A stretch of DNA of 63,937 bases, filler included, from Salisapilia sapeloensis CBS 127946 (lineage: Eukaryota; Protista; Oomycota), in assembly GCA_023334545.1 (NCBI GenBank). It is 9 parts of 9 records of this genome, joined end to end, with 100 filler letters (N's around TTAATTAATTAA, not from the genome) between each part and the next. Parts side by side here need not be neighbours in the genome. Positions count along the whole stretch, not along the records: positions 5,101 to 24,321 come from JAADVB010000312.1; 8 more parts are not named here. The stretch is one strand, 5' to 3'. A program made the translations under genes and the position numbers. Shown here piece after piece: positions 5,101-24,321 of the stretch; the first letter of the stretch is position 1, and the number at the start of each line of letters is the position of its first letter. The notes below the pieces were generated by a model, which saw only the letters and a list, made by a program, of their open reading frames with translations, made no database searches and was not told where the DNA came from.

Positions 5101-7283
5101 CGAGGTGTCACTGCTGAAGCAAGTTGGAAAATGAAAAGCAATCGGACTGGCGCGCACAACCAGTATCCAAAGCTCGACCAACGTCCAGTTGTTTTGCAGG
5201 AACAGGCAAAAACAGCTTGCTCATCGTTACTCGATCGACAGATTGAGCATAGATCTACGCCAGCGTCTGGCCGTCACATCAGACTCGATGGGACATATAT
5301 AAGACGCAGTTGGTTGCCTGGAATACCTTAGGACTGGTGAGCATGTTGTGCGTATTTTTTGAATCCTAAAGTTGGACGGATGTATATCTAGACTATCCAA
5401 CAACCTTTTTTGCTTGATTGTCGTCTAAATGATCGACGATTGACTCTTGGCAAGGTCATGTTGAAGTGTCATCTCGTATGATGGAAAGCGGGGAAATGCT
5501 CTCTTGAGCTATTGCGAAAGGAAGCGTCAAATTTGCTACTTTAATCACCTTGACAAGTGCTTTCGGAAAGCCTTTCTCGTCGGATTGAATAACTGCCAGA
5601 GCTTTCATTGGTAATGACACTGCGATTGAATGCTCGATCAATTCTCTTCGTGGATAGGTAAACAGAAACGGGGTCTGAGTTCTACGTATAGGTAGTCAAC
5701 CAGAAGTAAATGAATCCTGTGATTTTATCCGTCTATTTTATTTACATCATGTTTTCAAAAATCCTCAGTCTATTCAATAAGCATTTGAGACGAAGCGTGT
5801 ATTTGATATGAATGCTCACACTCATCTTTTCCTTCAGATTTGCAAGAATCGAAGAACTTTAAGTAGTCGTATAAATTACGGAACGACATCCGAGCTACAC
5901 CAATCTTTCAGAGCAGAGCAAAAGAAAGATTTGCTAAACATGCGATTAAAAAGAAATATGTAATGGACGCTGACTGATAACGCCATCAGTTCACAATCGT
6001 AGCCTTGGTTTAGCTTTTGCAAGCACATCAGGTCAAGCGGGTCTAGCGTAAATTCACTAGATACTTAATGGACATACCTTTTCGATCAAATAAATCATTG
6101 GACTTTTTGTTGTTGTGGCAAATACGGAAGTATATTAATTGGTGCTTATTACATCTTTACCTTTGGAGCCCACAAGAGGTGGGCTCAGCCATTCCGAAAA
6201 ATGGCAACGAGCATGCTCGGCTCCTTCTAAATCTTTCGACTGGAGGAAAGCTGCTAACTAGTTTCAGAGTTTGCGAAATTGAAATCGGCGCTCCTAGGTA
6301 ATAGATCATTGATTTTCTACAAGTCCTGGTATTTCCATGATATATTCGAACGTTTTATAATTGGTAAAATGTAAAGAGCTAGGCGGTACCAAACGAGTGA
6401 TAACGATCGTAAATGCGAGGCTATCGTGTGAAACCAAGCGTACTCTACACTCATTTTAACCTCCCAGGAAAGATTGAGGAAATTGAAAGTATTCTAGAGA
6501 AATTGAAGTATAACTGTGTTGATGTTTGGCAACATAGGGTCTAATGCATATCAAAAGACGTCAAAGTTGAATACCATTAGTCATCTAGTCTAATTTGTGC
6601 TACCTTAAACATTTCTTCTGCCATTGAATAAATGGCAATGGTGGTAGTGTCGAAAATAAAAATATTTAAGCTTTTGTACTAGCGTACTTGTTAGAAACCT
6701 TGCAAACTGATGTAGATAAGTAGCTTGCTTATCCTACAAATAGTGTTCTAGCGAGGAGTAGATCAATAAAATACCTGTTCTGAAAGAAGATTTAAAAATA
6801 GCTTTTTAGTGCGTGAAGCGAGCATAAAAGTATATATATCAGACGCCACTACGGTGATACGCGGGTGGGATGAGATATTTAGCGTTTCTGTGCATTAACG
6901 TGCCGAATAGACAAACAAGTATTCGGACGAAGATATGCCTCTTAAATGACATCCGGGGTCTGATAGTAGACATTTGACGTGTTTATATTGCTATATTTTT
7001 TTTAAATATCAGCTTTGATTGACCTTGATAACCGAGTTGATTTCCCGGTCCTATAGGTCTATTTTTTAATGAATGATTTAAGTTCATGGCCGCGTATGAT
7101 CCGACAAAGCATGTTGTTAACATGATAGTCACCGAAGTCTTGGCATAGGTTTAGCACATCTTACATTTCGAAATTAAAATTCCCTCTGATAGTTCGAGCT
7201 GCACTGAACAGCATTTGATTCGCATTAAATCCCTCGCAGCTCATACATTTATTATCATCAGCCACTGAGTTCTTTCCGGCACG

Positions 7284-9985
7284 ATGAAGTGTTATAGTCA
7301 AGAAATTGCTTATATCTTCCTCTTGCTTTGTGCTTTGCCAGGCATATATGCTCAGAATGCCAAATCTCCTTCCAAGTCAGGAGTTGTGTAAGTTTATCGA
7401 TAAACCTTCCAGCAAGACAGATTGCTCACTTTCCTGTTTTGTAGTAACCAGATTAACAAGGATATCTGGCAACTTAATGGATCTCATTATCATGACATCA
7501 AAATCCTGTACAGCAACGTGAGCTTGTCTAGTATGCATTTACCAACTCACTTTGTCCATGTAGTAACGTTCGTCAAAACCCGATCAAAGAGATAACGGGA
7601 ACGTTTCCAAACCTAGAAGAGCTGTACGTCTTATATGGCATTGGGTTTCAACAAGTAGTACACTCTCTAAACTTTAATCTGGGCAGGTATATGAGCGAAT
7701 CCTGGCTTATACACCTGGATGGGGACATTTTTCCCAGCCTTCGTAAAATGTTAGTGTTCCTATCTACATCGAAGCTAGGGTGGCTAAGTATTTTCTATCT
7801 TTGCATACAAATTAGAGAAAGCAACCACGGCAAGTTAGAGAGCGTTACCGGCACATGGAAGAAGCTTGAAAGCTTGTTAGATTTATTATATCTAAATTGG
7901 ATGACGTAGATTTTATTGTGTGTATTAATGTAGGCAATTGTATGACAACAGCATCTCTGAAATCAATGCTACAATGCCAGAGCTCACTAAGGCGTAAGCT
8001 TTATGCAGTCATATATTGTGTCGGTAGAATCGACATCCCACGTGCGCACGTAGATCGATAGAAGCAAATCCTATTAAAGAAATATCGGGGGAGTTTCCAA
8101 AGCTGGAAAAGCTGTACGTCTGACATAGCTTTAAGCAGTGCCAAGTGACTAGTTTTCTGAAAATCGATCTAAATAGGAACATGAGCAATACACAGCTGAA
8201 GAATCTAGAGGGTGATACCTTCCCGAGTCTTCAAGAGCTGTAAATGCATATATTCACACTGCACCGTCGATATTTAAATGCTAATTTCCGACCGCAAATG
8301 AACTAGAGAAAGCAATGCAGGCATATTAAAGAAGGTCACTGGTGAATGGAAGGAACTTGTCATATTGTAAGTCTTCAACTATATATAATCTAGGACATAC
8401 ATATCATCTGTGTTCATGTAGGAGCTTAATCAACAGCAGTGTCTCCGAAGTAAAGGCGCAGATGCCCAATCTCAGTGTAGCGTAAGCTTTAAATAGCCGT
8501 TTGTCTCTTTCGTGTAGCTGACACCTTGTACGTAAATACAGTCAGCTGAGCTTAAACCCGATCAAAAATCTGTCGGGAAACTTTCCAAGTCTAATACAAT
8601 TGTGCGTCCGATAAGACATCACATACTATCAAATAGTACACATACTAAAGATTGGTCTGAACAGATACATGAACGGAACCTTGCTCAAGAGCCTACATGG
8701 AAAAACCTTTCCTAGACTTCACAAACTGTAAATAATACTGAAGACATTGTAGCATTGACGATAACATATTAATCTTGCGACCTACACAAATAGGGTGAAT
8801 GCGCGCGGTAGATTAGAAAAAATCACTGGCAAATGGGAGCAGCTTTTAATCTTGTAAGCTTTTGATTATAATCAATATCAAGACGTGTATGTTATTATAT
8901 GTGCTTTATAGGGTTGCAAGACACAACAAAATCTCCAAATTGGACGCGAAGATGCCTCAGCTGACCCATGCGTAAGCTTTTGATCACCAATTATCTTGTC
9001 TGTATCCGAGATGACTCAAATGTGAGCCAGAGACCTCGATTACAACTCCTTTACTGATTTCGACTGCACCGACATGCAGCTTAAGTACTTGTAAGACACA
9101 TTAAAGATGATTTTTAAATACATTGAGCTCACAAGTATCACATGTAGGAATCTGTCAAATAATATGCTAACGAGTAAAAGTCTACGTGGAGACAAGTGCG
9201 AAAATCTCCAAGAAATGTATTGCTGTTATTGTATCCTGCTGCGTGTATGCGACTAATCGGCTCAAAAAGCAAGTTGAATTATAATGATATCAGAGAGCTT
9301 GATGATCGGCACAGCAAGACTCTCGACTCGGTGACGAAATTGTCCGTGATAGTTTATGAATATGCAAGCACAAATAGTTTACTCTGAACTCTTGGTAGGA
9401 CTGCGAGTGACGGTAATTTGGAGCAGTGGAACGGAAGCTGGCCCAATCTTGTTAAAGTGTACATATTCGTTGAATATATGCGTGTCTATTCGCGTTAACG
9501 TTCTCTTGATAATAAAGGTCAATGCCGGGCAACAAACTGTCTAAGATCGACGCATTTATTCCGAATGCCACTTGGATGTAAGATGTATCCTTGACTAATA
9601 TGAATGAGAGACTATCCTATATTCGGATCAACTTACAATGTTGCTTACGATACAGTGATCTTCGATCCAACAAACTGGGCACTTATGGATTTCAGCCAAG
9701 ACCTTTTGTACAAGCTGTCGTGGATGCTACTTCTGTAGCAGTTAGCAAGTACATGTCCACTCTCAGTATCAATTCGTAAGTGAACACAAATGCACTATCT
9801 TGTGCAAGGTTATTCAGATATTGATTTGATTGGTAGGTTTCTGGACGATAACCCTATGATGGAGTAAGATTCGAGTGTATAGCTTAATCTTTCATATCTA
9901 TGTATAAAAACATTCTTTACGGCTAAAATGATTAACGTTTGCGATGACATGTAGACAATCAACGGATAACGCTACGCCTAACTAA
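7284..9985 (+). CDS. Secreted leucine-rich-repeat protein, about 22 exons, one LRR per exon (3' end uncertain)
   Basis: Exon 1 (7284-7387) encodes the signal peptide MKCYSQEIAYIFLLLCALPGIYA. GT-AG exons follow at 7445-7507, 7564-7623, 7687-7749, 7816-7875, 7934-7993, 8054-8113, 8177-8239, 8307-8366, 8422-8481, 8542-8601, 8665-8727, 8794-8853, 8912-8971, 9031-9090, 9148-9216, 9270-9341, 9399-9458, 9518-9577 and 9656-9775, then probably 9837-9863 and 9955-9985. All are phase 2-2, and the spliced frame is open with LxxLxLxxN-type repeats. Confidence 0.87.
7564..9030 (+). repeat. Tandem triplication of a 4-exon (A-B-C-D) module, period about 489 bp, inside the LRR gene
   Basis: Exon starts are A 7564/8054/8542, B 7687/8177/8665, C 7816/8307/8794 and D 7934/8422/8912. 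Exon lengths are 60/63/60/60 in every copy. Confidence 0.85.
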
Positions 9986-10532
9986 GCTGGGAACACACGA
10001 CATCGATCCAGTTATAGAAAGAGAACCGTCGCCTAGCGGACATGGATAACTTGAGAAACTCAACTTCGTGAAAGACCTTACGTAATTTGACAGAATCAAA
10101 ATGTATTTTGCTTTTACGTTTTCTACAACAAACTATGCAGCAGATATTGAAGCAGAGATAAGTACTATAGCACTAAGTTCGTGTGCTCAAAACAAGCATG
10201 CGTAGCGTTCATAATATAGAGCGCTTTTACATGTACATCATTCCACTTATTATGTGCAGCTCAACTACGATTGAAGAGCCGTTTCTCCTCTTCTCTTCAT
10301 TCTATAGTGGTCGGATCACCCTGTCAGAGTCGCTGTTCAGTCAAGTTCCGAAATGCTATTTCTCCAAAAAAAATTTCGACGATGGTATTTAATGCTTCTT
10401 TGTCATTTGCACCACCACATATGGCAGAGTCTTCGTCCCAGGATTTCCTGTTCCATTCGGTCACCTGAATAACTTCTGTGGATGAAGTGAATTGAGCAAA
10501 GGCACTCAGCGAATTTTCAGTCGAGGGCCAAG

Positions 10533-11752
10533 TTAATCTGAGTTGAACTCGTCAATTCCGCCAGCACACGTATCGTTGCCTGTCAAAGGAGTCGATTCTT
10601 CTGCCAGCTGAGATATCCCAGAAGACTCCACGATAGTCAATCCACCCGCTTCTTTCTCATATCTTATAGTTAGAATTTCTTTTCGAGCAACTTTATACGA
10701 ACTAACTTGACTAACAATGTGATTGCAATTAGGATAGAGTCAAGCCTTCTTGGTCACTAGTTTCAATCTTGGAATGACGTCGATTAAGTCAATGGGAAGA
10801 ACACATTTTCTACAGACCGATGGATCACATAGAGTACAGAGAGAAGCTTTGTGTAAGGGACCAAATCGCTTTTTGCAAGATCGACATTCGGAATTGCTTA
10901 CGACTTTGCTCATGTCGTTCAAACGCATGACATATTCCTTGTTCACACTTTTTATCTGAAGAAACCACGAAAGTTTCTTTTGTTTCGCAGATTGAATGGT
11001 TGTCCTAGTGTCCATGAGTCCACTGGCCACAGTAACGACGGCAATAGAGTCGAGGAGATTGTTTTCTGATACTTCATAATCTCCCTTGATAAACATTTCA
11101 ACCGACTGTTCCGTAACGGGTTTAAAGAGAGGGACATACGAAATTCGTGACCGTATGATGCCTCTTTCTTCGAGTGGAGGGGTAGTCGGTAGATCTACTG
11201 AATGCATGAAATAGTATCCAATGCGCTCATCTTTACTGACTTGAAGAAGTCCATTCGCTCGAATGTAAACGCCACCTCGGTCTTTAACAACCCTCGAAGT
11301 GCTCGACTTGGGTTACCACTATGCCATTGGAGAACAGTGCAACGATAAGGATGCTCCAAAGTTGACTTTTCAATCGCCTCCAGAATTTGACAATTTAACA
11401 CCGGTGAGCCCCAGTAGCTCACAATTTGCAAAAGTGATTCCTCATCCCCGTTCACCAGACCAAAAAGAAGGTCATCGATAGTATTCATAATCGTTCCGTT
11501 ACCGACGACGACACGAGGCACTTGTCAATCACTACCGTTTGTAGCCAAATATTTTACCACACGTCGCGGCGGGTTCCGCTCTCGATATATAGCTACATTG
11601 CTGTATGTCTTGATCGTTTTCCTTTGTCTGCGGTTAAATCCGCGAGGCATTGATTGGTCAAACCTTTGATAATGTCGAAGCGCTTCGTGAACGAGTATCT
11701 TCGCGATGCGCTTGCAGTCGGCTTTTTCCATCCGAGAGAAATAAGTCTTCAT
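10533..11752 (-). pseudogene. Disrupted oomycete START-like + FYVE-type zinc-finger gene
   Basis: Three ORF pieces join into one family member (GTIMNTIDDLLFG; HPYRCTVLQW; GYYFMHSVDLP; CRSCKKRFG...CTLC..SVCRKC). Lesions: in-frame TGA at 11525-11527 and 10740-10742, and a frameshift near 11290-11310. Confidence 0.6.
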
Positions 11753-13400
11753 ACGCGTCTGCTGCCCATTGCGTGGTCATGACTTCGACGGTAATGTCAG
11801 CAGTTTAGTTTTGGAAACGGCATGAAAACTCAGTGCCAATCCTTTATTTGGAGACGATACGGCGGGAAACATGTCTGGCGTGCTCATATATCACCCTCTG
11901 TAGCGTATAGTTTCCCTTGTACCAAGCATGGTAACATACCTCGGACAGAAAATCGGGCACTATACTTGAGCACTCGGAGGATCGTGGTGATGAAAGTACC
12001 AGTCTATTTTGTTTCTGCTTTGGCAATGCCTATACGAATGATGTCAATAAATGTACAAATATCCAAGTACAGACTGCTGGAGGCAACGGATATAAATGAT
12101 GAGCAAATAGAGACACATTACGCTGATCACTTAATGTTATCCTACGCTTCAATTGTATGCGTCTTTGTAACTTTGGCAGGAATAAAATAAAGTCCCACCC
12201 TGCTGAAACTCCGGATAATGCTAGCAGCGTTGTCAGACGGTTTGAAGCGCCTTCGTCTGTAAAACTATCAGCCCTTTGTATATAGTGTCCATTAAAAGGC
12301 GAGAAAATGAAGCAGTCACATATGCAAAGCACAATGACAGTGCATGCATGCTGAATGGTATCAGCAACTAAAAATTGATGCGAGTTGCACAGGTGAATGA
12401 ACTTCTTAACTTGGTAGCTACCTGCCGATGGTTTTCTTAGAGAATATATGGAGACACTGGATCAGTTTGATGTCCCTGTATCTATCGCTATGCAGCGAAA
12501 GCTTTCTTCAGAATGCAAAAGGAGTTATATTACGACAACAAGTGGTATAGTTGCTCTGGGAAGCAGTTTGTCCTTTCTTCCTTGCCTCGTGACCTTCACA
12601 TTCGTGTTTACACTGTGATCAGTTAGCGTATCGTGCTATGCAGGCTGGTAGAGCTTTGATCTCTCCAGTGAAGGAGATCCTTTCTTTGACGATAATCATA
12701 CATACATAGAGTTACGAGTTGATTTTTATATGGAAGGAATCTATCTCAATTCAATCAACTGCTCTGAATGCGCAATTGTTTATTTTAATTTCTAAAAGAG
12801 TTGTCGTACTGGTAACCTAGTAGACATATTGCACCACACATCTCTTTCGAGTGATGATTCGTACATACTCCCACCGTTGGAACCTCGCTTGCTAGCATAC
12901 CATTACCTAGAAAGCTTTCCACACTTTAATTTTAGTCGCCACTGACATCTTATCTTGTAAGACTCTCCCATGATTTTCGTACGAACCAACATGTACCAAA
13001 GGAGTCGCTACTTCAATGCTATCTGTCTGATATCGCAATCATAGCAGACATTGTACTGCAGCTGTTAGCACTCTTACACAAAGTATACAAGCTATCTGGT
13101 CGTCCAACGCATCCTATTTGTTTTGTAAACAGAACAAAAATTCTATTTGGACGCCTCATGCCTTTTCGAGTAGAAAGAGACGCAAAGACAACCAACATAT
13201 CTATCTCTAGCTGCCTTTTGGACTGGGTTGTACGTCATGCTTGCGTAAATATAGCAAAAACTCCCGGCAACCAACCCAAGCGCTTTTATCCGATCTATTT
13301 GAATGCATCATCTGATACCATCTGGCTCTGTAGTTCAATCATTTTTTAAATAGGAGTGTATCCGGTCGTTTCATTCTCCCTTTTGTCTGCTCAAGCCATC

Positions 13401-15499
13401 ATGCTCGCCGCAAGACTACGTTCCATACATACACGCATCCGCCCTCGCCAATTTGTCCGTTTGGCAACCTCTACTAAGCAGCAAGCGGCATTTTCAACCA
13501 ACATCTTCACGTCCCCTCATGGACAAGTCCAAGTACCTGATCACAGTATCTGGGGTCTCGTCCATGAGCGAGCAAAGGCTTCCGGTGATAAAGAAGCCTT
13601 CATTGACGGGATCACGAACGAAAGCTACACTTTCCAGGAATTGCAGGACCGCTCACGCAACCTCGCCGCTGCTCTCGCCTCGGATGGTGTCCGCAAAGGA
13701 GACGTACGTACACGCCATCCCACTAAAACTACATTGAAACGATCAGAAGACTAATAGTATCATTCATATGCAATAGGTGGTGCTCTTGCACTCGATCAAT
13801 TGCATCGAATATCCCATTGTCGTGACTGGTACAACTTATTATGTATCATGTGCATTCATCCAGATACTTACACGCTGGTGAAGCTCTCGCAGGACTTGGT
13901 GCAGTATGCTCCCTTGCATCCCCGATGGCGACACCGACGGAATTGTCTAATCAACTAAAAGCTGCTAAGGTAAAGCTACTGGTATTAACCTCTTATGTGC
14001 CGATCCTCATCTTGGTCATGCATCCTATAGGCACGATACCTCATTAGCCATCACGAACTATCTGATATCGCTATCCAAGCTGCTGCAAGTGCTGGTCTAG
14101 CTCAGAATCATATCTATACTATGGGCAAAAGGACGAAGCGCTCCGACCTGGCTAACATCAAGTACGTACATAATTGCCTAGTTCCCATCCTCGAGCGCAG
14201 AATAATTTTATGATTTCCTACGTAGTGATATGGCCATGCGTGACGGACATAATTATGAGTTCGAGTTCATCGATCCGAAATTACACTCGATTCTGCCGTT
14301 CTCAAGCGGTACAACGGGAAACCCAAAGGTATGTCTATCCACCAACACGCGCCAAAATGAATTTTCTAACTTGATCTTGATGTACTAGGGCGTATCCTTA
14401 AGCGCTCGCAACGTTGTCGCCAATGCGATGCAAGTCAATGCAATAGAAGAGATAGAAGGTCATTCCCTCGGTCTCCTCCCGTTCTTCCATATCTATGGCT
14501 TCCTCCTGCTCCATCTATCCGTCTCCCAAGGCGTCCCCAAGGTCGTCCTACCTCGCTTCATGCCAGACACCCTCCTCCAAGCGCTCACCACCTACAACGT
14601 ACGTCGACTCAAGTATGGTGATAAACTGTAATTCTTATCTTTGCATTACCTAGATCCGGACGGCGCACGTCGCTCCTCCAACACTTCTCTTCTTAGCTCA
14701 TCATCCGGCTGTTGATGAATATGACTTGTCCAACACAAAGTATCTCGTCTCGGGTGGTGCACCTGTCGGTAAAGGTGTCGAGAAACTCGTGCACGATCGC
14801 GTTGGTATCAAAGTAAAGCAGGTATACGGGTGCACAGAGTTGTCTCCTGCTGTCAACTGGGGAGAAAATGATAACCTCAAGCCAGTACGTGCATCTATCG
14901 ATCGTCCATATCTACATCCGTAACCTTTTATCTTGTAGGGAAGCGTCGGACGATTGATTCCAAATACTGAACTCCGAGTAAAGTGCACAAAGACAGATAA
15001 AGATCTGGGTGTTAATGAACATGGAGAGCTCTTGTATCGTGGGCCGCAGGTTATGATGGGTTATCTAGATAACCCGGAAGCCACAGCTGCGACTGTGATG
15101 AAAGACGGGTTCCTACGCACGGGCGACATTGGATACATTGATGAAGACGGATTTGTATTTGTTGTGGATCGAGTCAAGGAACTTATCAAGTACAAGGGAC
15201 ATCAAGTAGCGCCAGGCGAGTTGGAAGATATATTGAAAGGACACCCGGATGTTGCGGACTCGTGCTGCGTGCGTAGTAAGGATGAGATGGGGGAAGAGAT
15301 TCCGAAAGCGTTCATCGTGTTGAAGGACCCGAAGGATGAAAGTGAAGAGATGAAGCAAGGGATCATGGATTATGTTGCGGACAGAGTTTCTCCATATAAG
15401 AAGATTCGAGCGGTCCAATTTACGCATGAAATTCCGAAAAACCCGTCCGGCAAAATCTTACGTCGTCATGTTCAAGAACGAGAGAACAGTCAGGAGTAA
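13401..15499 (+). CDS. 4-coumarate:CoA ligase-like / luciferase-like AMP-binding enzyme, multi-exon
   Basis: Motifs LPFSSGTTGNPKG, VYGCTELSP, GELLYRGPQVMMGY, FLRTGDIG, DRVKELIK and KNPSGKILRR lie across GT-AG-bounded exons. The N-terminus is Arg-rich. Confidence 0.9.
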
Positions 15500-15718
15500 T
15501 GACGTTGGATGGACATCGAAAACCCGGAGTATGGTGGAAGTATCTTCGGGATCGAGTTGCCTTATTCATGTTCCTCGCGTTGGATAAAAGATATTCAACA
15601 TGTACCTTTGCGATCGTTCCAAGCATTCTTACGATGCTGTTGCGTTATACTCTACACTTTATACGTTGTTTAAAGTCTATGACGTACGACTTATATTCCA
15701 ATGCGACTGATCGTCACA

Positions 15719-17288
15719 CTATCCTTTGCAAAGGTAGCTTGAGATCATATAATCTTCGTATCGTTCAATCTCAGACTGCATATACGACGATAAATTCTCC
15801 TTCGTGACAGTGAAGAGGATGGACAGAAAACATAAATACGACGTCTTACCATGGCGGCAATATGGCAAGATGTGACCTTCTTAGCAGACAAGCTAGTCGG
15901 AAAGAATGAAAACGATTTATATTGCGAAGAGCAGACCTACTTGGATGGGTATTCATGCGAAGTGTCGCCGGACTGGACGCGGCATCGGTGCAAAGTTAGA
16001 TGGAAGTCTAGAGTAGGCAGCGTCCCACTGGAGCTCAGGCTTGTTGGTGATGGTAGAGACTGTGTAGGAGACTGTGTATTTCCATGCAGCAACGTCGTAA
16101 TAGCGAGCGCTGCACCGACGGTTAAGCAGCACTTATGGAGCCAATGGAAGCCATCGACACCGTAGATCAAGTGGACGAAGAGACATAAGACGAGGAAACC
16201 GGCGGACGTACATGTGCCTACCATACTCAACCACTTATCCTCTATCTCTTTATCGTCCTTCTTTTCCTTCCGAAGTGCGCCTAATAATCCCTTGTTGGAC
16301 GTTTTCTTCGATAACACTTGACAACTAACGGAAACTTGGATTTGTGTCGTATGCGTCGTTTCATGGACATCGATCCAAGTAGAGTGATTGGCATCCCATG
16401 CACTCGTCAACGCCTGTACACCAACGCGTCCGACGCCTCCAGTCTGGAGTAAGATAATGCAGGCACCTCCAGGCGCCAAGACACCCAAGTCGAGTGTATC
16501 TCCCCACGCAACTTTCCGTCGAACGACTCGCTCTCGTGGTTTCGACGATGACTCGATGACCGAGACAAGGGCGATTCGAGGTGGTGTGTTTTGCTATGGA
16601 AGGAATGAGCAAGTGATGATAAAAGAGTATGATAAAAGCGTACGAATAAAGAGTAGAGCTCGTGGTTACTGGCGAGTAAAGTCGGACTCACAAGTGACTC
16701 GTATGCATCGTCGTCACTTGTGTCGCGACTGCCAGCGTCATCTTGTACGAGTGCGAGCGATATATTCTGATCGTTCGTCTTTCGGTTCTTCTTCTTGTTT
16801 AAAAGTACCTTTCGCTGCTCTTCAATTGCAATCGACCAGCTTTCACATGTAGAAGCCAATCGCAAGGGTGTGCGCATAAGAAAGTATCGATTGTCTTTCT
16901 ATCAGCAAAGATTGGTATCGTTATAAGTTGTCATTACCAAGTCGACATACGGTGATAATTTCCAGATAATAGTGCTCGGCATTCGACTCTACCGCCGATT
17001 CTGGGACCTCATCCTCCGTCCGAGCACGTACGCACTTGATGGACTTGAGTGCCAGCTAATTATAGTAATATACCATCAATACGTCATCGTATAGTCATAT
17101 GATGCAAGTAGAAGTACATGTCCACGCTCTTCACCGAGCAGCTCACCTTCCACGGCTTTACGAAAGTAATGGAGCGAATGAGGTGTTAGGATGAAAAGCC
17201 GAGACGACCATCCCCCTCTCACTGCTCCATCGCGACGCTTCTCCAGTTGCCCACAGAAGAGCACTCGGCCGTACGCACCATACTCCAT
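15719..17288 (-). CDS. Multi-exon protein with N-terminal PH domain and a hydrophobic hairpin; exon structure approximate
   Basis: GQLEKRRDG..RGGWSSRLFILTPHSLHYF is a PH-domain start. Downstream minus-strand ORFs (16407-16877, 15937-16488) and GT-AG junctions give plausible coding continuity. Confidence 0.5.
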
Positions 17289-17431
17289 GGATCCGTTCGT
17301 GATGTGATTACAGCACTTTTGACCAGGGCGATCAGTATCATGGTACCAACAGTGTACCAACTGGAACTTTTGTGGATCGATCGCACAACCGAAGAACAAG
17401 CCTCCGCTTCGTCCGCTTCGTCCGCTTCACA

Positions 17432-18624
17432 ATGCTCAACCTCGATAACGACAACAAGATACTGAGAGACGTATTGGAGGGGCGTGTTGGAGCAAAGTAT
17501 GCTAGCAGTTTATATCTTTTTATACGTTTAATATGGTCAAATTGGATTCTTATGCTTGGGATTAGAGCGCCGCGTCCGGTACAACCTCTTGAAATCCGTC
17601 TCTGTGATTTTGATGGTAATACTCTCGATCCACTTCTCTTTATCGGTCCAGTCTGATGATATGATAGATGCCCAATACGACGTTTCTATCGCGGATAACA
17701 TGCTCACTGTCTCCATGGTCTACCCTCCGTACCAATCGGTCCAAGGGTCCTATCTCTCTTCTATCAGACATCATTCTATACTCACATTTATCGTCTAGAT
17801 TGGGAGCAGAGCACATGTTCAGCGTCACGTACCCTGAATTCACTCTAGCAACGCCAAAGCAAGGTTTCGATCTGTCTCTCCAAGTCAATGTGGACAGTAT
17901 CACACCTGATAACGCCGGTGCGTACCTTTCAAACTATCTGTACAGTCTTTATACTGATTATGTAGTAGAATCTTTCATCGACCGAATTGCATTGCTTAAG
18001 CGTAATATCCTCTGCGCTCCTTTTGAGCAGTGCTTTGCTGCACTCCAGAATGGCAACAGCAGTTCACTCACACCAGTGCAGATTCCATTCCGTCGGAACG
18101 AATCCGTGTGGATTCTACCACAAGACGACCGTATCGTCGTCGTCTTCTCCATTTGCTTTGAAGAGAAGACGGACCAAGCGATTGCTCGTGTCTTCCTCCA
18201 AGAATTCGTCGACACCCGTCGATCGGTGAATAATGCACCTCCTGTGGCATTTAATAAAGAACCGCCGATGGAACTCCGTGGCGCACCGAACGTCAAGTCG
18301 TCGAGTGACTTGGTCGGGTACCTGAGCTTTGCGATTTTCCCATCGCACGTGGCGACGGATGCAAAACGAGCGAAAGCAGCGTCTTTGTTACACAACTTCC
18401 GGAACTATCTGCACTACCACATCACGTCGTCAAAAACATTTTTGCACATTCGCATGCGTAAGCGCGTGGATTTGTTACTGCAAGGTACCTCGTCTCTATA
18501 TATTGCCATTCATCCTTCGCGTACTAAAGCATGCTTCTTAGTACTCAATCGTGCTCGTCCGGAGAAAGACCCATCGAAAGTTCAGAAGAAGACGATTACC
18601 GGACGAACGTTTTCACGTGCTTAG
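17432..18624 (+). CDS. ARPC2: Arp2/3 complex subunit 2 (p34-Arc), multi-exon
   Basis: MLNLDNDNKIL..., IARVFLQEFVD, NAPPVAF, GYLSFAIFPSH and FRNYLHYHI..SKTFLHIRMRKRV. Confidence 0.9.
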
Positions 18625-18793
18625 ACATTGCCGCATGAAGAAGGATGGTTGCAATCTAAAGCTACAACTCCTTTGCTCTCGTTTATTATTGTAGTTGGGT
18701 TGAAGTGCTGTGTTTCATCCAATCAATAGCGAGGAAAAAATAATAACAACCAATCAATAAAGTCTTTCGGACAACCACAAATCGCACAGCAGG

Positions 18794-19351
18794 ATGCTAC
18801 GACGGCTGCATCACCTTCGTCCGCTTTCATGCGCTTCAAGGCAAGCTGCGACTCGGCAATCCGCATGCCGATGGATGTCGTCGGAGAGTACTGCTGAAAT
18901 TACTGATTTGGCTCCTAAAACTTCCAAGAAGCAACAGCAGCCGGCAAAGACGACGACGTGGCACAAGCTGCTTGTCGGACGGATTGAAGCCATTGAACCT
19001 CATCCGGCAGCAGACACGCTGAATATCTGCCAAGTATCCGTGGGTACGGAAGCAGACAACCTTCAGATCATCTGCGGTGCACCCAACGTCCGCGTCGGTG
19101 CGCTCGTGCCGGTTGCCACCATCGGCTCGAAGCTTGCGATGGCATCACCGGATCAGGATGATGGCATCAAGATGGTCAAGATTAAAAAGAGCAAGTTACG
19201 TGGTGAAGTTTCGCAAGGTATGATTTGCTCGGAAGAGGAACTCGGATTGTGCGAGAAGAGCGATGGCATCATGATTCTAGCCGATGACGTCGCCGTAGGG
19301 AGCCTCGTGCAGGACGCGCCTACGTTCCGACAACGACAAGTAGACAATTGA
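18794..19351 (+). CDS. Stand-alone OB-fold tRNA-binding domain protein of bacterial PheT (B2 domain)/YtpR type with transit-peptide-like N-terminus
   Basis: LVGRIEAIEPHPAADTLNICQV..G..QIICGAPNVRVG..VATIG..IKKSKLRGEVSQGMICSEEELGL..SDGIMIL; N-terminus MLRRLHHLRPLSCASRQAATR. Confidence 0.85.
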   Translation: MLRRLHHLRPLSCASRQAATRQSACRWMSSESTAEITDLAPKTSKKQQQPAKTTTWHKLLVGRIEAIEPHPAADTLNICQVSVGTEADNLQIICGAPNVRVGALVPVATIGSKLAMASPDQDDGIKMVKIKKSKLRGEVSQGMICSEEELGLCEKSDGIMILADDVAVGSLVQDAPTFRQRQVDN

Positions 19352-19598
19352 TGCATAAAGCAGTTTATTTGTTTTTTCTTCTTGTCTGTTGGTACCGATA
19401 TCGAAGTATGAAGTATGCAAATGAAAAACCTACAAAAGTTCAAGCCGATCGCTACAAGTCGCCCGTGGCGGAGACGACGTCCTGTTCTAACCTACTCTTT
19501 CTTTTCATAAAAAGAAAACAATTCCTCAAAAATAAACCGACCAAAGGGGAAAACACTCCATATCCAAACGCTTGCTCGTAAAGACACGCGAACATCAA

Positions 19599-20027
19599 CT
19601 AACGCTTGCGAGGCATGTTGGCGACGCCATCCAAAAACTCCACCGTCTGATTCCCAGCGGTCACATGGAGCAGGCCTGTGGGCTGTTTGTTCTCATAAAT
19701 GGACAATTCCACCGGCGTCGGGACGCCAGGGCTCACGAACAATGCGTCGTGGCGCTGCGGAGACATCGAGTTCATGTACTGGTTCGGGTGGCTGCTGTAC
19801 ATGCCATAGTCGTTATACATAGACTGGTCCGGCGAGTTCGGAGGAAGCGGCGGGAGGGGCGGCGGAGAACCCGATGGCACCACCCGGCGACGAGTGGGTG
19901 ACACGAGCTGCGTCGACTTGAGCTGCATCTGAATCTGCAAGGCGGCGTCCGTGTAGGCCGTGTAGTGGGCGTACGAGTGGTTGTTCAGAGGAAAGTGGTT
20001 CGGAGCGTCTCTGTAGATGGCGGCCAT
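19599..20027 (-). CDS. Hypothetical Pro/Tyr-rich protein (may have further exons)
   Basis: Open frame from MAAIYRDAPNHFP with coding-like composition; no recognisable domain. Confidence 0.3.
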   Translation of the reverse strand: MAAIYRDAPNHFPLNNHSYAHYTAYTDAALQIQMQLKSTQLVSPTRRRVVPSGSPPPLPPLPPNSPDQSMYNDYGMYSSHPNQYMNSMSPQRHDALFVSPGVPTPVELSIYENKQPTGLLHVTAGNQTVEFLDGVANMPRKR

Positions 20028-20331
20028 GGTCAATGTATTGAGAAGAGAAGGGCCGCGTCCGCTCACCCTCTGCCTCTCGAGATGGAGTTTTTTCAAATGA
20101 CCAGAACTTTTTTTCGGCGTTTTCTTGATTGCGCTTCTCCAGACCGTACAGGTCACGTATTTTCGACCAATCACACATGTCCAAGTCACGAAAACGAAAC
20201 GTTGGATTGGATGAAATCGAGAAGAATGTTCGTAACGACATAAAAGGGGTTAAAGACAGAATGTTGGATTTGCGCCTCTTGAGAATGCAACGTGGCTATC
20301 TTGAACCGTTTCAGCTTCTGGTACGGATGCG

Positions 20332-20853
20332 CTAGAGCCCTAGATCGCTCAATCCGTCGTGATCGATTGGACGAACACCTTGTTCCCAATGGAACTTGCG
20401 CTCTTCTTGCGTAATGGGGAGGTCGTTAATGCAAGCAAAGCGCTCGGCCATGTACCCTTGGTCATCGAAAACCCAGTTTTCATTTCCATACGATCGGTAC
20501 CATTGATTCGCCGACGTATCCTTCCACTCGTACGCAAACCTTACTGCGATGCGATTTTCGCTATAGGCAAACAGCTCTTTGATCAGTCGATAGTCAGACT
20601 CTTTTTCCCATTTTCGAGTTAAAAACGCCTCGATCTCATTCCGACCACTAATGAAGTCACTCCGGTTCCTCCATTGACTGTCCCTTGTATAGGCTAGCGC
20701 CACTTGAGCCGGGTTTCGTGAATTCCACGCGTCTTCAGCTGCTCGGACCTTTTGCGTGGCCGTCTCTTGCGTGAACGGCGGCAGGGGAGGTCGCGCCGAT
20801 TCACTAAAGTGACGCACATGAGCAACAGTAGGGAGGCGTATCAGACGTTGCAT
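20332..20853 (-). CDS. DUF1348 / SnoaL-like (NTF2 fold) protein
   Basis: [66 protein letters not shown] and terminal GLSDLGL. Intronless. Confidence 0.9.
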
Positions 20854-21509
20854 TCTTCCTCGAGTCAAATTTGCAATCCGTCGCAGCTTGGTAAATAAAC
20901 CGTATACAATTTAAAGGGCGCGATTAATGGTTGGATTTCTTTGGTAATGGGCGTCGTGTTTACATGAGGCTTGTATGCTCTATAATGATAAGATGGTCAC
21001 GACAAGCTTAATAGGAGGATTAGGAGTATTTCTAAGCCAACAAATTCGATTGTAAATTGTCAAATCAATGCTTGTGGGAAAATTCACACGGGTTCAAAAG
21101 GCAGAGACCACAATCAGACTGGAAACCGCCATTTTACAACGCATGAACTAATTATGCGTCTTTAGTCCTTAAAACTTAGTCTATTTCTACCGCCCTCATA
21201 GAAATCTACAATCGGTTTTGGTAATTTACTTGGTTGATCTCAAAAATACACATACATTTATTGTTAAAATAAGGTATTTTGTATCGCCAAAAACCACAAT
21301 TATATTGGAAAACGTAGCTTACCGACAGACTTGACACAAATCACGGAGCAGCCCCGAGTGGCCTCATCAGCGCTTTCTCCACCGCTTTCGACGCTGCCTC
21401 GTGCCTCCATCGAGCATCTATTATACCTATATAGCTCCCCCACCTCCTTTGTGTCTTACACCTTTAAAATTACCCACGAACTTGTCAATTGTTCTACGCT
21501 ACACGCACC

Positions 21510-24100
21510 ATGTTCAAAAGCTTCTCGAGCGCCGTCCAATCCACCGTCTCTAGCGCCGTCCAAAGCGCTGTCTCGGGTGCCATGGGAGAAGAATTCGCCA
21601 AGCACTACGAAACACCAAAGGACAGCACTGCCTCAGGTGGTCATTCCCTCGCATGGAAGATCTATCCAGGCGTATCCAAGAAAACGAATCAAGAAGTTAG
21701 CATCTTTATCTTTGACAAGGAAGATTTGCGCCGCATCAAGTCCAAGGATCTACAAGAACGTCTATTGGATGTCTTGCGGCAAGAATTGAAGACTTTACGA
21801 GTCCTACGTCACCCAAATGTCCTGCGCGTCATCGAGATCTACGAAGAGACGAGACGATCGCTATCCTTTGTGACCGAACGTGTTACCTGCTCCTTGGCCA
21901 ATGCGAACAAGAACTTTAGAAACGTAGGAAACGTAACGCCAGAGGTACTAGAGCTTGGTATGGGCGAATTTGACATTGCGTGCGGCTTGCTCCACGTCGG
22001 AGAAGCACTCAGTTTCCTCCACCGAGAGGGTAGACGTGTTCATTTAAGTATCGGTCCGCACAGTATCTTCATTACACCCAAAGGTGAGTGGAAGCTAGGT
22101 GGCATGGGCTTCTGTCGTGTCGTCGAGCCTGGGAAAACGTCTCGAAGTGAGTACTACTCGTCGGAAGCATCTTCCGGTGCCGTAGATCCTTCTACTGGCC
22201 AAATTGAGTTCAGCTGGGAACCTCCATTAGAGTACTGTGCGCCTGAAATCGTGACAGAGCCCCGCCAGTTCACGAGCAAAGCCGACATGTTCTCTCTCGG
22301 GTTACTCGTATATGAGTTATTCTGCCCTCCAAGAGCAGACGGTGGTCGCTCGCCTGTACTGGACATTAGTGACGGGAACACTGTCTCCCATGGCTACAAA
22401 GTCCAGTCTCTCCACCCAATCAAGTTCCCATCAACAGTGCCTGTCCCTCTCCAGAACACAATTCGGACATTGCTATCGATCGAGCCTTCGGAACGTCCGG
22501 AAGCAAGAGCATTCCTTGCTTCCCCATTCTTTGATTCCGGTTCTATCAAGACGCTGCGATCCTTGCAGAGTCTCGTGGAGCAGGAACCTGCTGCCCAAGC
22601 ACGTTTTCTAAATGACTTGCCCGATCAGTTGTCCGATTTCTCTCCACGCGTCTTGCGAGACATGGTTCTTCCGTCCTTACACAGCGTTTCCTTGAACAAA
22701 GCCGTTGCGCCTTTCGTCATCTCTCCTCTGCTCAAGGTCGTGGAGAAAGTAGACAAGTCTACTTTCCGAAGTGACATTGCGCCCATGCTCGTTCCGTTAT
22801 TAGGCATGACAGAGCCTGTGCAGTGCATGCTAAAGTTCGTCTCGGAACTCGAGATCCTCCTTCCCAAAGCAGATGAAACCTTCTTGCGAGACCATATCGT
22901 ACCAATGTTATGTCGTGCGTTGGAGAGTCCTGTCCCGGAGATCTTAGACGCTGTCTTGAGTAAGATCCAGGACCAAGCGACCTTGTTTGAGTATCGTATA
23001 CTAAAGCAGACGATCCTTCCGCGTGTAAACAAGTTAATTTTACACCCGCCACAGGCAACAGTGCGGGTGAATGCACTCGTGTGGCTCGCCAAGTCCTTCA
23101 ATCTGTTCGACAAGGACCTCTTGATTGAAAGTGTAGTGCCGACATTGGCACAGACAGTCCAGAGCGACAAGACGCCTGCAGTGTGTATGAGTGTCTTGGC
23201 ATGCTACGACCGACTGGCGAAACACTTAGGTCCAGAGTATACTGCCAAGCTCGTGCTTCCCTCTGTCGCTCCTTTATTATGGGAACGACAGCTAAACAAT
23301 GCGCAGTTCGATGCTGTCTGTGAAAAGCTACAGGATATGCTCAAGGACGTCATCTCTGCTCGAGACAAGGAGTTTGCACAGAAGGATTCCGTCGGATCTG
23401 TTGCGACGTCTGCTGGATTCAGTGACGCAGCGAAAGCGATGGAGAAGAATAAGGAGGAGGAGAGTGGGATGGGTAAAGCGAGTAAGGTCTTGAGTGAAGA
23501 GTACGTTGTGGAAGAGGAGGAGAAGGAGACGCAGCCACGGAACGGGTCCGATGATCCGTTCTACCTCGGTAGCTCCTCCTCGTCTGTATCCAGGTCGGCA
23601 CCAAAAGAAGAGAAGAGTGATAGGAGCTCCAGAAGAGTTGGTCGAAAAGGATCGAGGGCGAGGAAGACCAGGCAAAATGATGGCAACCTTCTTGACATGG
23701 ATACGTCTCAGGTACGGCTTCTTATCGTTTATAGATAGGGGTGATCTAATTGATGGCATAGTCTACTGGAAACGACTTGTTGAGTATGCAGTCGACAGCA
23801 CCTCCACCACCGCAGAACCAGGACATGTTCAGTGGCATGAATATGACTGGGAATGGGTATGGCCAGCAAGCGATGACACCTTATGGACAGACGTTTGCAC
23901 CTCCGCAGCAACAGTTTAGTCAGATGCAGATGACGCCGTACGGTCAAAACTACCAGCAGCCTCCTCCGAATAACGTGAATGCCGGTATGAACATGGGTGG
24001 CATGGGCTCACAGCTCCAGCTGCAGAACGGAGGGTATCAACAACAGCAGCAGCAACGGTCGAATCCGAATGATCCGTTCAGCGCCTTTGATGGACTATGA
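21510..24100 (+). CDS. SCYL2: SCY1-like pseudokinase (SCYL2/CVAK104 type), two or more exons
   Basis: The kinase-like N-lobe lacks catalytic motifs (WKIYPG, LRHPNVL, GEWKLGGMGF) and is followed by HEAT repeats and a low-complexity tail ending NDPFSAFDGL*. Confidence 0.85.
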
Positions 24101-24193
24101 AAGTAGATAGCATACATGACAATCGATACAGACGTCAGACATCTCGTTTTTTCATTCGCGTTACATGTATTGCATCCTTTCTTCTTTATAGTC

Positions 24194-24321
24194 CTATTCG
24201 TCCGTGACGCAGCCTTCGGATGCCGAGGAGACGTTCTTGATGTACTTGTAGAGCGTCCCGTTGGTGGACTTGAGCGGCGGGGCGGTCCAGTTCTTCTTCC
24301 GGTCTGCCAGCTCGGCGTCCG
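24194..24321 (-). CDS. ilvD: Dihydroxy-acid dehydratase, C-terminal fragment truncated by gap
   Basis: [41 protein letters not shown] matches the conserved IlvD C-terminus. Confidence 0.85.

Follow-up and report, generated by a model that had tools for sequence, protein, structure and literature searches.

RESULTS

Gene structure

The window analysed here, a stretch of 63,937 nucleotides (nt; filler included) from Salisapilia sapeloensis CBS 127946 (assembly GCA_023334545.1), contains at positions 7284–9985 of the plus strand a leucine-rich repeat (LRR) gene that is divided into 22 exons. All positions are those of the whole window, and the surroundings of the gene were analysed in the 19-kb piece that holds it (window 5,101–24,321, JAADVB010000312.1). 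The exon chain, which starts from the ATG at 7284, was obtained by dynamic programming together with manual linking of GT-AG introns, and gives a coding sequence of 1395 nt and 464 codons without internal stop. A reading made from the sequence alone (the sequence-only reading) had proposed a hidden LRR gene of about 22 exons with a signal-peptide exon at this position, and this is borne out by the intact 22-exon frame and by spliced RNA for the 3′ half. The same two observations exclude a pseudogene or an assembly artefact.

All 21 introns are GT-AG introns in phase 2, with lengths of 53–91 nt overall (53–78 nt for introns 1–19, 61 nt for intron 20 and 91 nt for intron 21), while exons 2–19 measure 63, 60, 63, 60, 60, 60, 63, 60, 60, 60, 63, 60, 60, 60, 69, 72, 60 and 60 nt. 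The 18 exons of 60, 63, 69 or 72 nt reported previously, their phase 2-2 symmetry, their 53–78-nt GT-AG introns and the peptides quoted with them were all reproduced. A single phase in 21 of 21 introns would have a probability of ∼1e-10 under independent phases, an assumption that does not hold here because the repeat units arose by duplication. Introns 1–19 each interrupt the codon of a hydrophobic residue at LRR position 4 (in order V, L, L, I, L, A, L, L, L, A, L, L, L, A, L, I, L, V and I), so that the earlier statement that the split codons restore a hydrophobic residue at one repeat position is true for these 19; at introns 20 and 21 the split codons are those of S and E. The hydrophobic split codons begin with CT, TT, AT, GT or GC and are therefore hydrophobic whatever the third base. 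Because of these first two bases, and of phase 2 throughout, any exon–exon join keeps both the frame and a hydrophobic junction residue, and the claim that exons can be skipped or swapped without a frameshift is correct as a property of the sequence.

Exon 1 (7284–7387, 104 nt) carries the start codon and the predicted signal peptide, ends in phase 2 and lies outside the RNA contig cover described below. It is followed by exon 2 (7445–7507, 63 nt), a degenerate first LRR or N-terminal cap unit with the donor GTACAG, whose boundaries are the least certain of the model, the choice among four stop-free options having been made by phase and LRR register. At 7239–7250, ∼35–45 nt upstream of the ATG, lies GCTCATACATTT, which resembles the start of the oomycete initiator/flanking promoter element (GCTCATTYYNCAWTTT), the match being good in the first six bases only. 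Introns 3 (7624–7686, 63 nt) and 4 (7750–7815, 66 nt) have a length of 3n and contain no in-frame stop, owing to which a 125-codon open stretch runs through exons 3–5 at 7532–7906. Retention of intron 3 or 4 would add 21–22 residues without truncation; two to three such cases among 11 introns of 3n length correspond to chance.

Block triplication and its age

A block of four units (types a, b, c and d) is present in three tandem copies, exons 3–6, 7–10 and 11–14. Each copy comprises four exons and four introns, and the three together occupy 7564–9030 on the plus strand with a period of 488–490 nt. Block A (7564–8053) consists of exon 3 (7564–7623; type a, repeat family D1), exon 4 (7687–7749; type b), exon 5 (7816–7875; type c) and exon 6 (7934–7993; type d, repeat family D2). 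The same order of types is found in block B (8054–8541; exons 7–10 at 8054–8113, 8177–8239, 8307–8366 and 8422–8481) and in block C (8542–9030; exons 11–14 at 8542–8601, 8665–8727, 8794–8853 and 8912–8971). In all three blocks the type b exon has 63 nt and encodes a 21-aa unit, and the other exons have 60 nt. The 489-nt period was visible by repeat search and MAFFT alignment, whereas Tandem Repeats Finder reported nothing at the LRR array because the block copies are too diverged. Further downstream, unit 18 is clearly assigned by its score to type c and unit 19 to type d, which suggests a fourth, degenerate block.

Homologous introns of blocks A, B and C have lengths of 63/63/63, 66/67/66, 58/55/58 and 60/60/59 nt and are 53–59% identical (MAFFT), as compared to ∼29% for non-homologous intron pairs (ungapped). 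The introns were thus duplicated along with the exons. Between blocks, nucleotide identity of the exons is 58–61% and protein identity is 43–53%; the proportion of synonymous differences (pS) is 0.62–0.76, corresponding to synonymous saturation, while the non-synonymous divergence (dN) is 0.37–0.48. The maximum nucleotide identity of any exon pair in the gene is 67%, and the 12 best pairs are all of the same type. Given the saturated synonymous sites, the exon pairs of at most 67% identity and the protein identity of 43–53%, the block duplication is ancient, and a dN far below the saturated synonymous divergence (dS) indicates overall purifying selection on the array since then.

A separate observation concerns the homologous introns of the three blocks, which keep their length within 0–3 nt and ∼55% identity while the exons beside them have reached synonymous saturation. 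These ∼60-nt introns therefore seem to be under constraint, whether at most of their positions or in length as such.

Transcription and splicing

RNA evidence comes from assembled contigs of four small runs (three samples, one 2019 study, one organism), which were aligned to 6900–10500 and differ from the window by at most one base over all aligned pieces. Exon 12 is the first exon with RNA cover, which extends to the 3′ end of the gene. All ten covered junctions match the model, each in 1–3 runs, with joints at 8727>8794, 8853>8912, 8971>9031, 9090>9148 and 9216>9270 for introns 12–16 and at 9341>9399, 9458>9518, 9577>9656, 9775>9837 and 9863>9955 for introns 17–21. The check by RNA that had been called for in the sequence-only reading therefore confirms introns 12–21. 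Exon 13 has RNA joints on both sides, and joints were likewise found for exon 14 and for the exons downstream of block C. These are three divergent LRR exons, namely exon 15 (9031–9090, 60 nt), exon 16 (9148–9216, 69 nt, with an RGD tripeptide) and exon 17 (9270–9341, 72 nt), followed by exon 18 (9399–9458, 60 nt, similar to type c), exon 19 (9518–9577, 60 nt, similar to type d), exon 20 (9656–9775, 120 nt), which contains the final LRR and a C-terminal non-repeat region, and exon 21 (9837–9863, 27 nt). Exon 22 (9955–9985, 31 nt), also present in RNA, ends with the TAA stop codon at 9983–9985. Two contigs run into the 3′ untranslated region (UTR), one to 10072 and another to 10064, and their reach sets its minimum extent at 9986–10072 (plus strand).

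The 24 junction observations and four loose ends from the four runs are all canonical neighbour-to-neighbour joins. No exon-skipping joint, and hence none of the skipped isoforms that were to be counted, was found among the contigs of the four runs, which cover exons 12–22 and in which rare variants are hidden by assembly. The word depth of the gene is just 2–6 in these runs, and since it is so low, the absence of RNA cover over exons 1–11 is most simply read as low, 3′-weighted coverage. The junctions of exons 1–11 rest on the frame, the GT-AG sites and the LRR register, with introns 3–11 further backed by positional homology to block C, introns 12–14 of which are RNA-verified.

The encoded protein

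The gene encodes a precursor of 464 aa. Exon 1 corresponds to a signal peptide with a hydrophobic core of ∼14 residues, the highest hydropathy window spanning residues 3–26, and cleavage is predicted after I-Y-A at residue 23. Beyond the signal peptide there is no hydrophobic segment (19-residue Kyte–Doolittle hydropathy maximum 1.0) and the tail is hydrophilic; neither a transmembrane segment nor a glycosylphosphatidylinositol-type tail was found in the 464-aa model protein. It contains 11 NxS/T sequons, and the mature part has only two cysteines. A regular-expression search of the model protein found no RxLR, CRN (LxLFLAK), CHxC or endoplasmic reticulum-retention motif, and the gene contains no signalling domain. 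From these features the product is probably a secreted, N-glycosylated protein consisting of LRRs only. That the array is the LRR ectodomain of a kinase is ruled out by the confirmed stop codon and 3′ UTR and by the next gene lying on the opposite strand.

One RGD tripeptide is located at residues 332–334 (window about 9195–9203, exon 16, LRR unit 16). The RGD tripeptide is of importance in some Phytophthora proteins; a single RGD is expected by chance in ∼1 in 10 proteins of this size.

With the split residue assigned to LRR position 4, the protein comprises 19 consecutive in-register units of 20–24 aa, mostly 20–21 aa, with the consensus LxxLxLxxNxIxxIxGxFPx. The tandem units carry the LxxLxLxx(N/C/S/T)xL segment that defines the LRR superfamily, and a 19-column profile of the 18 repeat exons, when compared with the PDB, gave LRR proteins as 30 of 31 matches, including chondroadherin, internalin B, variable lymphocyte receptors (VLR), dynein LC1 and ANP32, although with weak E values of 0.012–5. 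Seven exons searched singly in Pfam, together with a 103-aa piece that reads through an intron, gave no match, these pieces being too short or interrupted. Weak LRR-flavoured leads, with recognition below threshold, came from a feature search of the ESM Atlas for which the 125-aa read-through stretch was used. For exon 20, which at 39 aa is the largest coding piece free of stops, no genuine homolog was found among 1.84 billion representative proteins; its sole match, a low-complexity repeat protein, was dismissed as spurious. A degenerate DNA pattern for the type a exon had one chance match in metagenome contigs, which carried no LRR array.

The repeat units fit no LRR class exactly. Bacterial-class LRRs of the YopM/IpaH type have 20 or 21 residues and a variable segment xxLPxLPxx or xxLPxxLPxx (PMC5976695). 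The units described here agree with this class in both lengths, 20 and 21 aa, and in a hydrophobic-Pro pair towards the end of the variable segment; however, they lack the first of its two Leu-Pro pairs and have a conserved Gly at position 16 instead, so that each unit contains a single hydrophobic-Pro pair. The NxIxxI spacing resembles that of SDS22-like or internalin repeats, but compared to the SDS22-like class the units are two residues shorter, and the four unit types alternate as a super-repeat.

Between block copies, identity is 64% at the core positions 1, 4, 6, 9, 11 and 14, 12% at the predicted concave-face positions 2, 3, 5, 7 and 8, and 50% at the remaining positions. Such a pattern, in which the core is kept and the concave face has diverged, is usual for LRRs and is no test of positive selection; it would be compatible with a binding surface that varies along the solenoid.

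Genomic surroundings

The host was placed by the ARPC2 open reading frame (ORF) at 17668–18624, which is 64–68% identical to proteins of Peronospora, Plasmopara, Phytophthora, Globisporangium and Pythium and 57–61% identical to those of Saprolegniales, with no near-identical relative in the protein database. In the ARPC2 tree its branch, which is long and unresolved, falls within the Pythium/Lagenidium/Phytophthora clade (support 92/97). What had been called an oomycete-like lineage is, by ARPC2 identity and tree, an oomycete of the Pythium/Phytophthora clade. The gene order at 15851–20868, consisting of a PH-domain gene (minus strand), ARPC2 (plus), a tRNA-binding-domain gene (plus) and a DUF1348 gene (minus), is common to Pythium oligandrum and Plasmopara halstedii. 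In neither of these two species is an LRR homolog present within 10 kb of the syntenic locus. Upstream of the conserved order an acyl-CoA-synthetase-like gene is found here, as opposed to a DSPc-FYVE gene in the two others.

Since the neighbouring genes have long uninterrupted ORFs, such as a 749-aa SCY1-like kinase in a single ORF, the LRR gene, with 21 introns in 2.7 kb, is an outlier among the local genes. Its third-position G+C content (GC3) of 0.50 lies within the range of the neighbouring genes (0.42–0.57), which argues against a foreign origin by recent transfer. The region 5101–7283 upstream of the gene (at least 2.1 kb) is devoid of ORFs of at least 100 aa, and its G+C content is low, at 0.36–0.45 in 500-nt windows (0.40 overall). 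Gaps between neighbouring ORFs in the 19-kb piece are as small as ∼170 nt.

The downstream neighbour at 10740–11521 (minus strand) consists of two adjoining ORFs of 108 and 155 aa that probably belong to the same gene, interrupted by an intron or a change of frame, and the 155-aa ORF has a Cys-rich FYVE-like zinc-finger motif near its C-terminus. At 23777–24100 (plus strand), right after the SCY1-like kinase ORF and in another frame, lies a Gln/Pro/Met-rich low-complexity ORF of 107 aa, which may be a C-terminal exon of the kinase gene. Rfam and tRNA scans of the 19-kb piece were empty. Of the DNA data sets searched, one contains the locus.

DISCUSSION

Nature of the gene

Our results are best explained by one oomycete gene that is constitutively spliced and encodes a secreted, probably N-glycosylated binding protein made of LRRs only, the micro-exons being a relic of ancient duplication; we give this explanation a probability of about 0.7. 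An ancestral intron-bearing LRR repeat diversified into the four-type unit a-b-c-d, which was then, long ago, triplicated as a genomic segment of ∼489 nt. The one-repeat-per-exon layout records this history, in which the array grew as exons were duplicated in tandem together with their introns. The protein would form a solenoid of ∼19 LRR units whose concave face may bind an extracellular ligand, derived either from the wall or surface of the organism itself or from a host. The frame-symmetric exons would make gain and loss of repeats evolutionarily cheap; there is no sign of present use of this symmetry, either by somatic splicing or in recent evolution.

Several points weigh against this explanation. 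Assignment to the LRR superfamily depends on the motif and on a profile search with weak matches, and the proposed function is pure inference from the architecture, because the searches yielded no homolog. Exons 1–11 are without RNA contig cover in the four small runs, which makes the signal peptide and the whole 5′ half predicted parts of the model, and assembled contigs lose rare isoforms, which leaves room for low-level exon skipping.

Alternative explanations

A plausible refinement, though one of low probability, is that the product is a host-directed apoplastic effector or adhesin, a secreted LRR scaffold which binds a component of the host surface or wall during infection, the micro-exons being incidental. 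This alternative overlaps with the secreted binding protein favoured above and differs from it solely in that the ligand is host-derived. The signal peptide, the lack of a membrane anchor, the many glycosylation sequons and the RGD tripeptide are in its favour, as is the 5′ intergenic region, which is long compared to the smallest gaps between ORFs in the same piece. However, the RxLR, CRN and CHxC motifs are absent, a single RGD is expected by chance at the frequency given above, expression in the RNA runs is low and no homolog of known role was found.

The sequence-only reading had inferred a diversifiable recognition system, in which symmetric LRR cassettes would be skipped by splicing, or reshuffled by recombination among paralogs or alleles, to give many binding specificities, which is what has been proposed for the ROCO type I LRR exons of Ectocarpus. 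The description of a symmetric, one-repeat-per-exon secreted LRR gene stands, and the gene is transcribed, but the diversification finds no support, as the RNA contigs show one form, the exons are old and no spare exons were found in the 19-kb piece; we regard such a system as improbable. Three features would suit it: any join is in frame and keeps the LRR framework, owing to phase 2 throughout and the hydrophobic split codons; divergence between block copies is greatest at the positions predicted to face the ligand; and the array has been subject to unequal recombination, as is evident from the triplicated block. Against it stand the canonical joins in all RNA observations, the ancient block copies with their low exon identity, and a dN that remains well under the saturated dS, as expected from overall purifying selection.

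The loci at which exon shuffling has been described in Ectocarpus provide a comparison. These loci contain spare or inverted LRR exons in introns and near-identical, recently recombined exons, their exon number varies between recent paralogs, and they are linked to ROC-COR or NB-ARC domains (PMC3341825). The brown-algal ROCO type I loci resemble the gene described here in having one LRR per exon of constant length, freely recombinable in principle, and belong to large paralog families (PMC3341825, PMC11378527). At the oomycete locus, in contrast, neither near-identical exons (maximum 67% identity, pS 0.62–0.76) nor ROC-COR domains are present. Introns of 53–91 nt are too short to contain spare exons, and tblastn of the model protein against the 19-kb piece found no LRR-like match outside the 22 exons on either strand and therefore no paralog and no cryptic, inverted or other reverse-strand LRR exon within that piece. 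A Dscam-like mechanism would combine cassette isoforms with docking/selector pairing. Here only canonical joins were seen, in contigs that hide rare forms, and the LRR gene has neither inverted repeats fit for docking/selector pairing nor intron–intron complementarity.

A related and still less probable proposition is that the locus is one member of an oomycete family of frame-symmetric 60-nt LRR cassettes, with exon number and order varying between paralogs or isolates or with low-frequency skipping. The least probable alternative, that the transcript starts internally near exon 12 and that exons 1–11 are a decaying or separately regulated remnant, would fit the restriction of RNA cover to exons 12–22 in all four runs and the one contig end that extends 9 nt into intron 11 (at 8656), but is opposed by exons 1–11, in which the frame, the phase, the GT-AG sites and the register of the LRRs are all intact along 1.3 kb although synonymous sites have diverged to saturation, a sign of selection on them, by the very low coverage, 5′ fall-off being ordinary in poly-A-primed libraries, and by the lack of a signal peptide in a product starting from exon 12.

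Comparison with known one-repeat-per-exon genes

The one-repeat-per-exon layout is a known and recurrent architecture rather than an exotic one, since the intron position and phase recur in rice, the exon boundary in the type II exons of Ectocarpus, and phase-2 introns between tandem LRR exons in Tetrahymena. Plant genes of the ERECTA/SERK type have one LRR per 72-nt exon. In rice LRR-kinases it is standard for each exon to encode one LRR and for a phase-2 intron to split the codon of the first Leu of xxLxLxx (PMC3050792), and the oomycete gene has the same phase-2 intron at LRR position 4 and the same single repeat per short exon. The plant arrays are thought to have grown by exon duplication, as is proposed here. 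However, the exons of plant LRR-kinases have 72 nt and encode the 24-aa plant-specific LRR (LxGxIP), as opposed to 60/63 nt, 20/21 aa and xxIxGxFPx, and plant LRR-kinases carry a transmembrane segment and a kinase, whereas the gene described here stops after the LRRs (stop codon ending at 9985, RNA end at ∼10072).

The type II LRR exons of Ectocarpus, which occur in LRR-kinases and eight other loci, have the register xLxxNxL...LxxL, and neither cryptic or inverted exons nor tangible evidence of shuffling were found among them (Zambounis et al. 2012, PMC3341825). They share the exon boundary, the frame symmetry and a stramenopile host with the gene described here, but they have 72 nt (24 aa) and many lie in kinase genes. 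Tetrahymena has tens of thousands of 90-bp LRR exons, with almost exclusively phase-2 introns and a 'junction' amino acid (PMC6564038). The oomycete gene likewise has tandem exons of nearly equal length, phase-2 introns and a junction residue; however, the Tetrahymena arrays arose by clonal exon expansion that is very recent and involves thousands of genes, whereas only one locus with an old duplication is known here.

Implications

The LRR gene opens no new mechanism at present and is instead a fresh lineage for a known architecture; the earlier statement that no such system is known in oomycetes agrees with our literature search, which found no report of such a gene structure in this group. 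With it, an oomycete joins plants, brown algae and ciliates among the lineages that build LRR arrays from one-repeat exons, and animals also belong to these lineages. The 60/63-nt exon module is the shortest among those compared here.

As the gene illustrates, secreted proteins of oomycetes that are encoded by micro-exons can escape ORF-based views, and possibly automated annotation as well, which is relevant to secretome and effector catalogues. If the locus did prove to be one member of a cassette family, that family would give a lineage otherwise poor in introns a repertoire for extracellular recognition that can be diversified. Finally, the gene adds a data point to the question of whether the position-4 intron is ancient or has been repeatedly favoured: the phase-2 intron at the position-4 Leu in an oomycete, brown algae and plants may reflect an ancient mobile LRR exon module rather than convergence.

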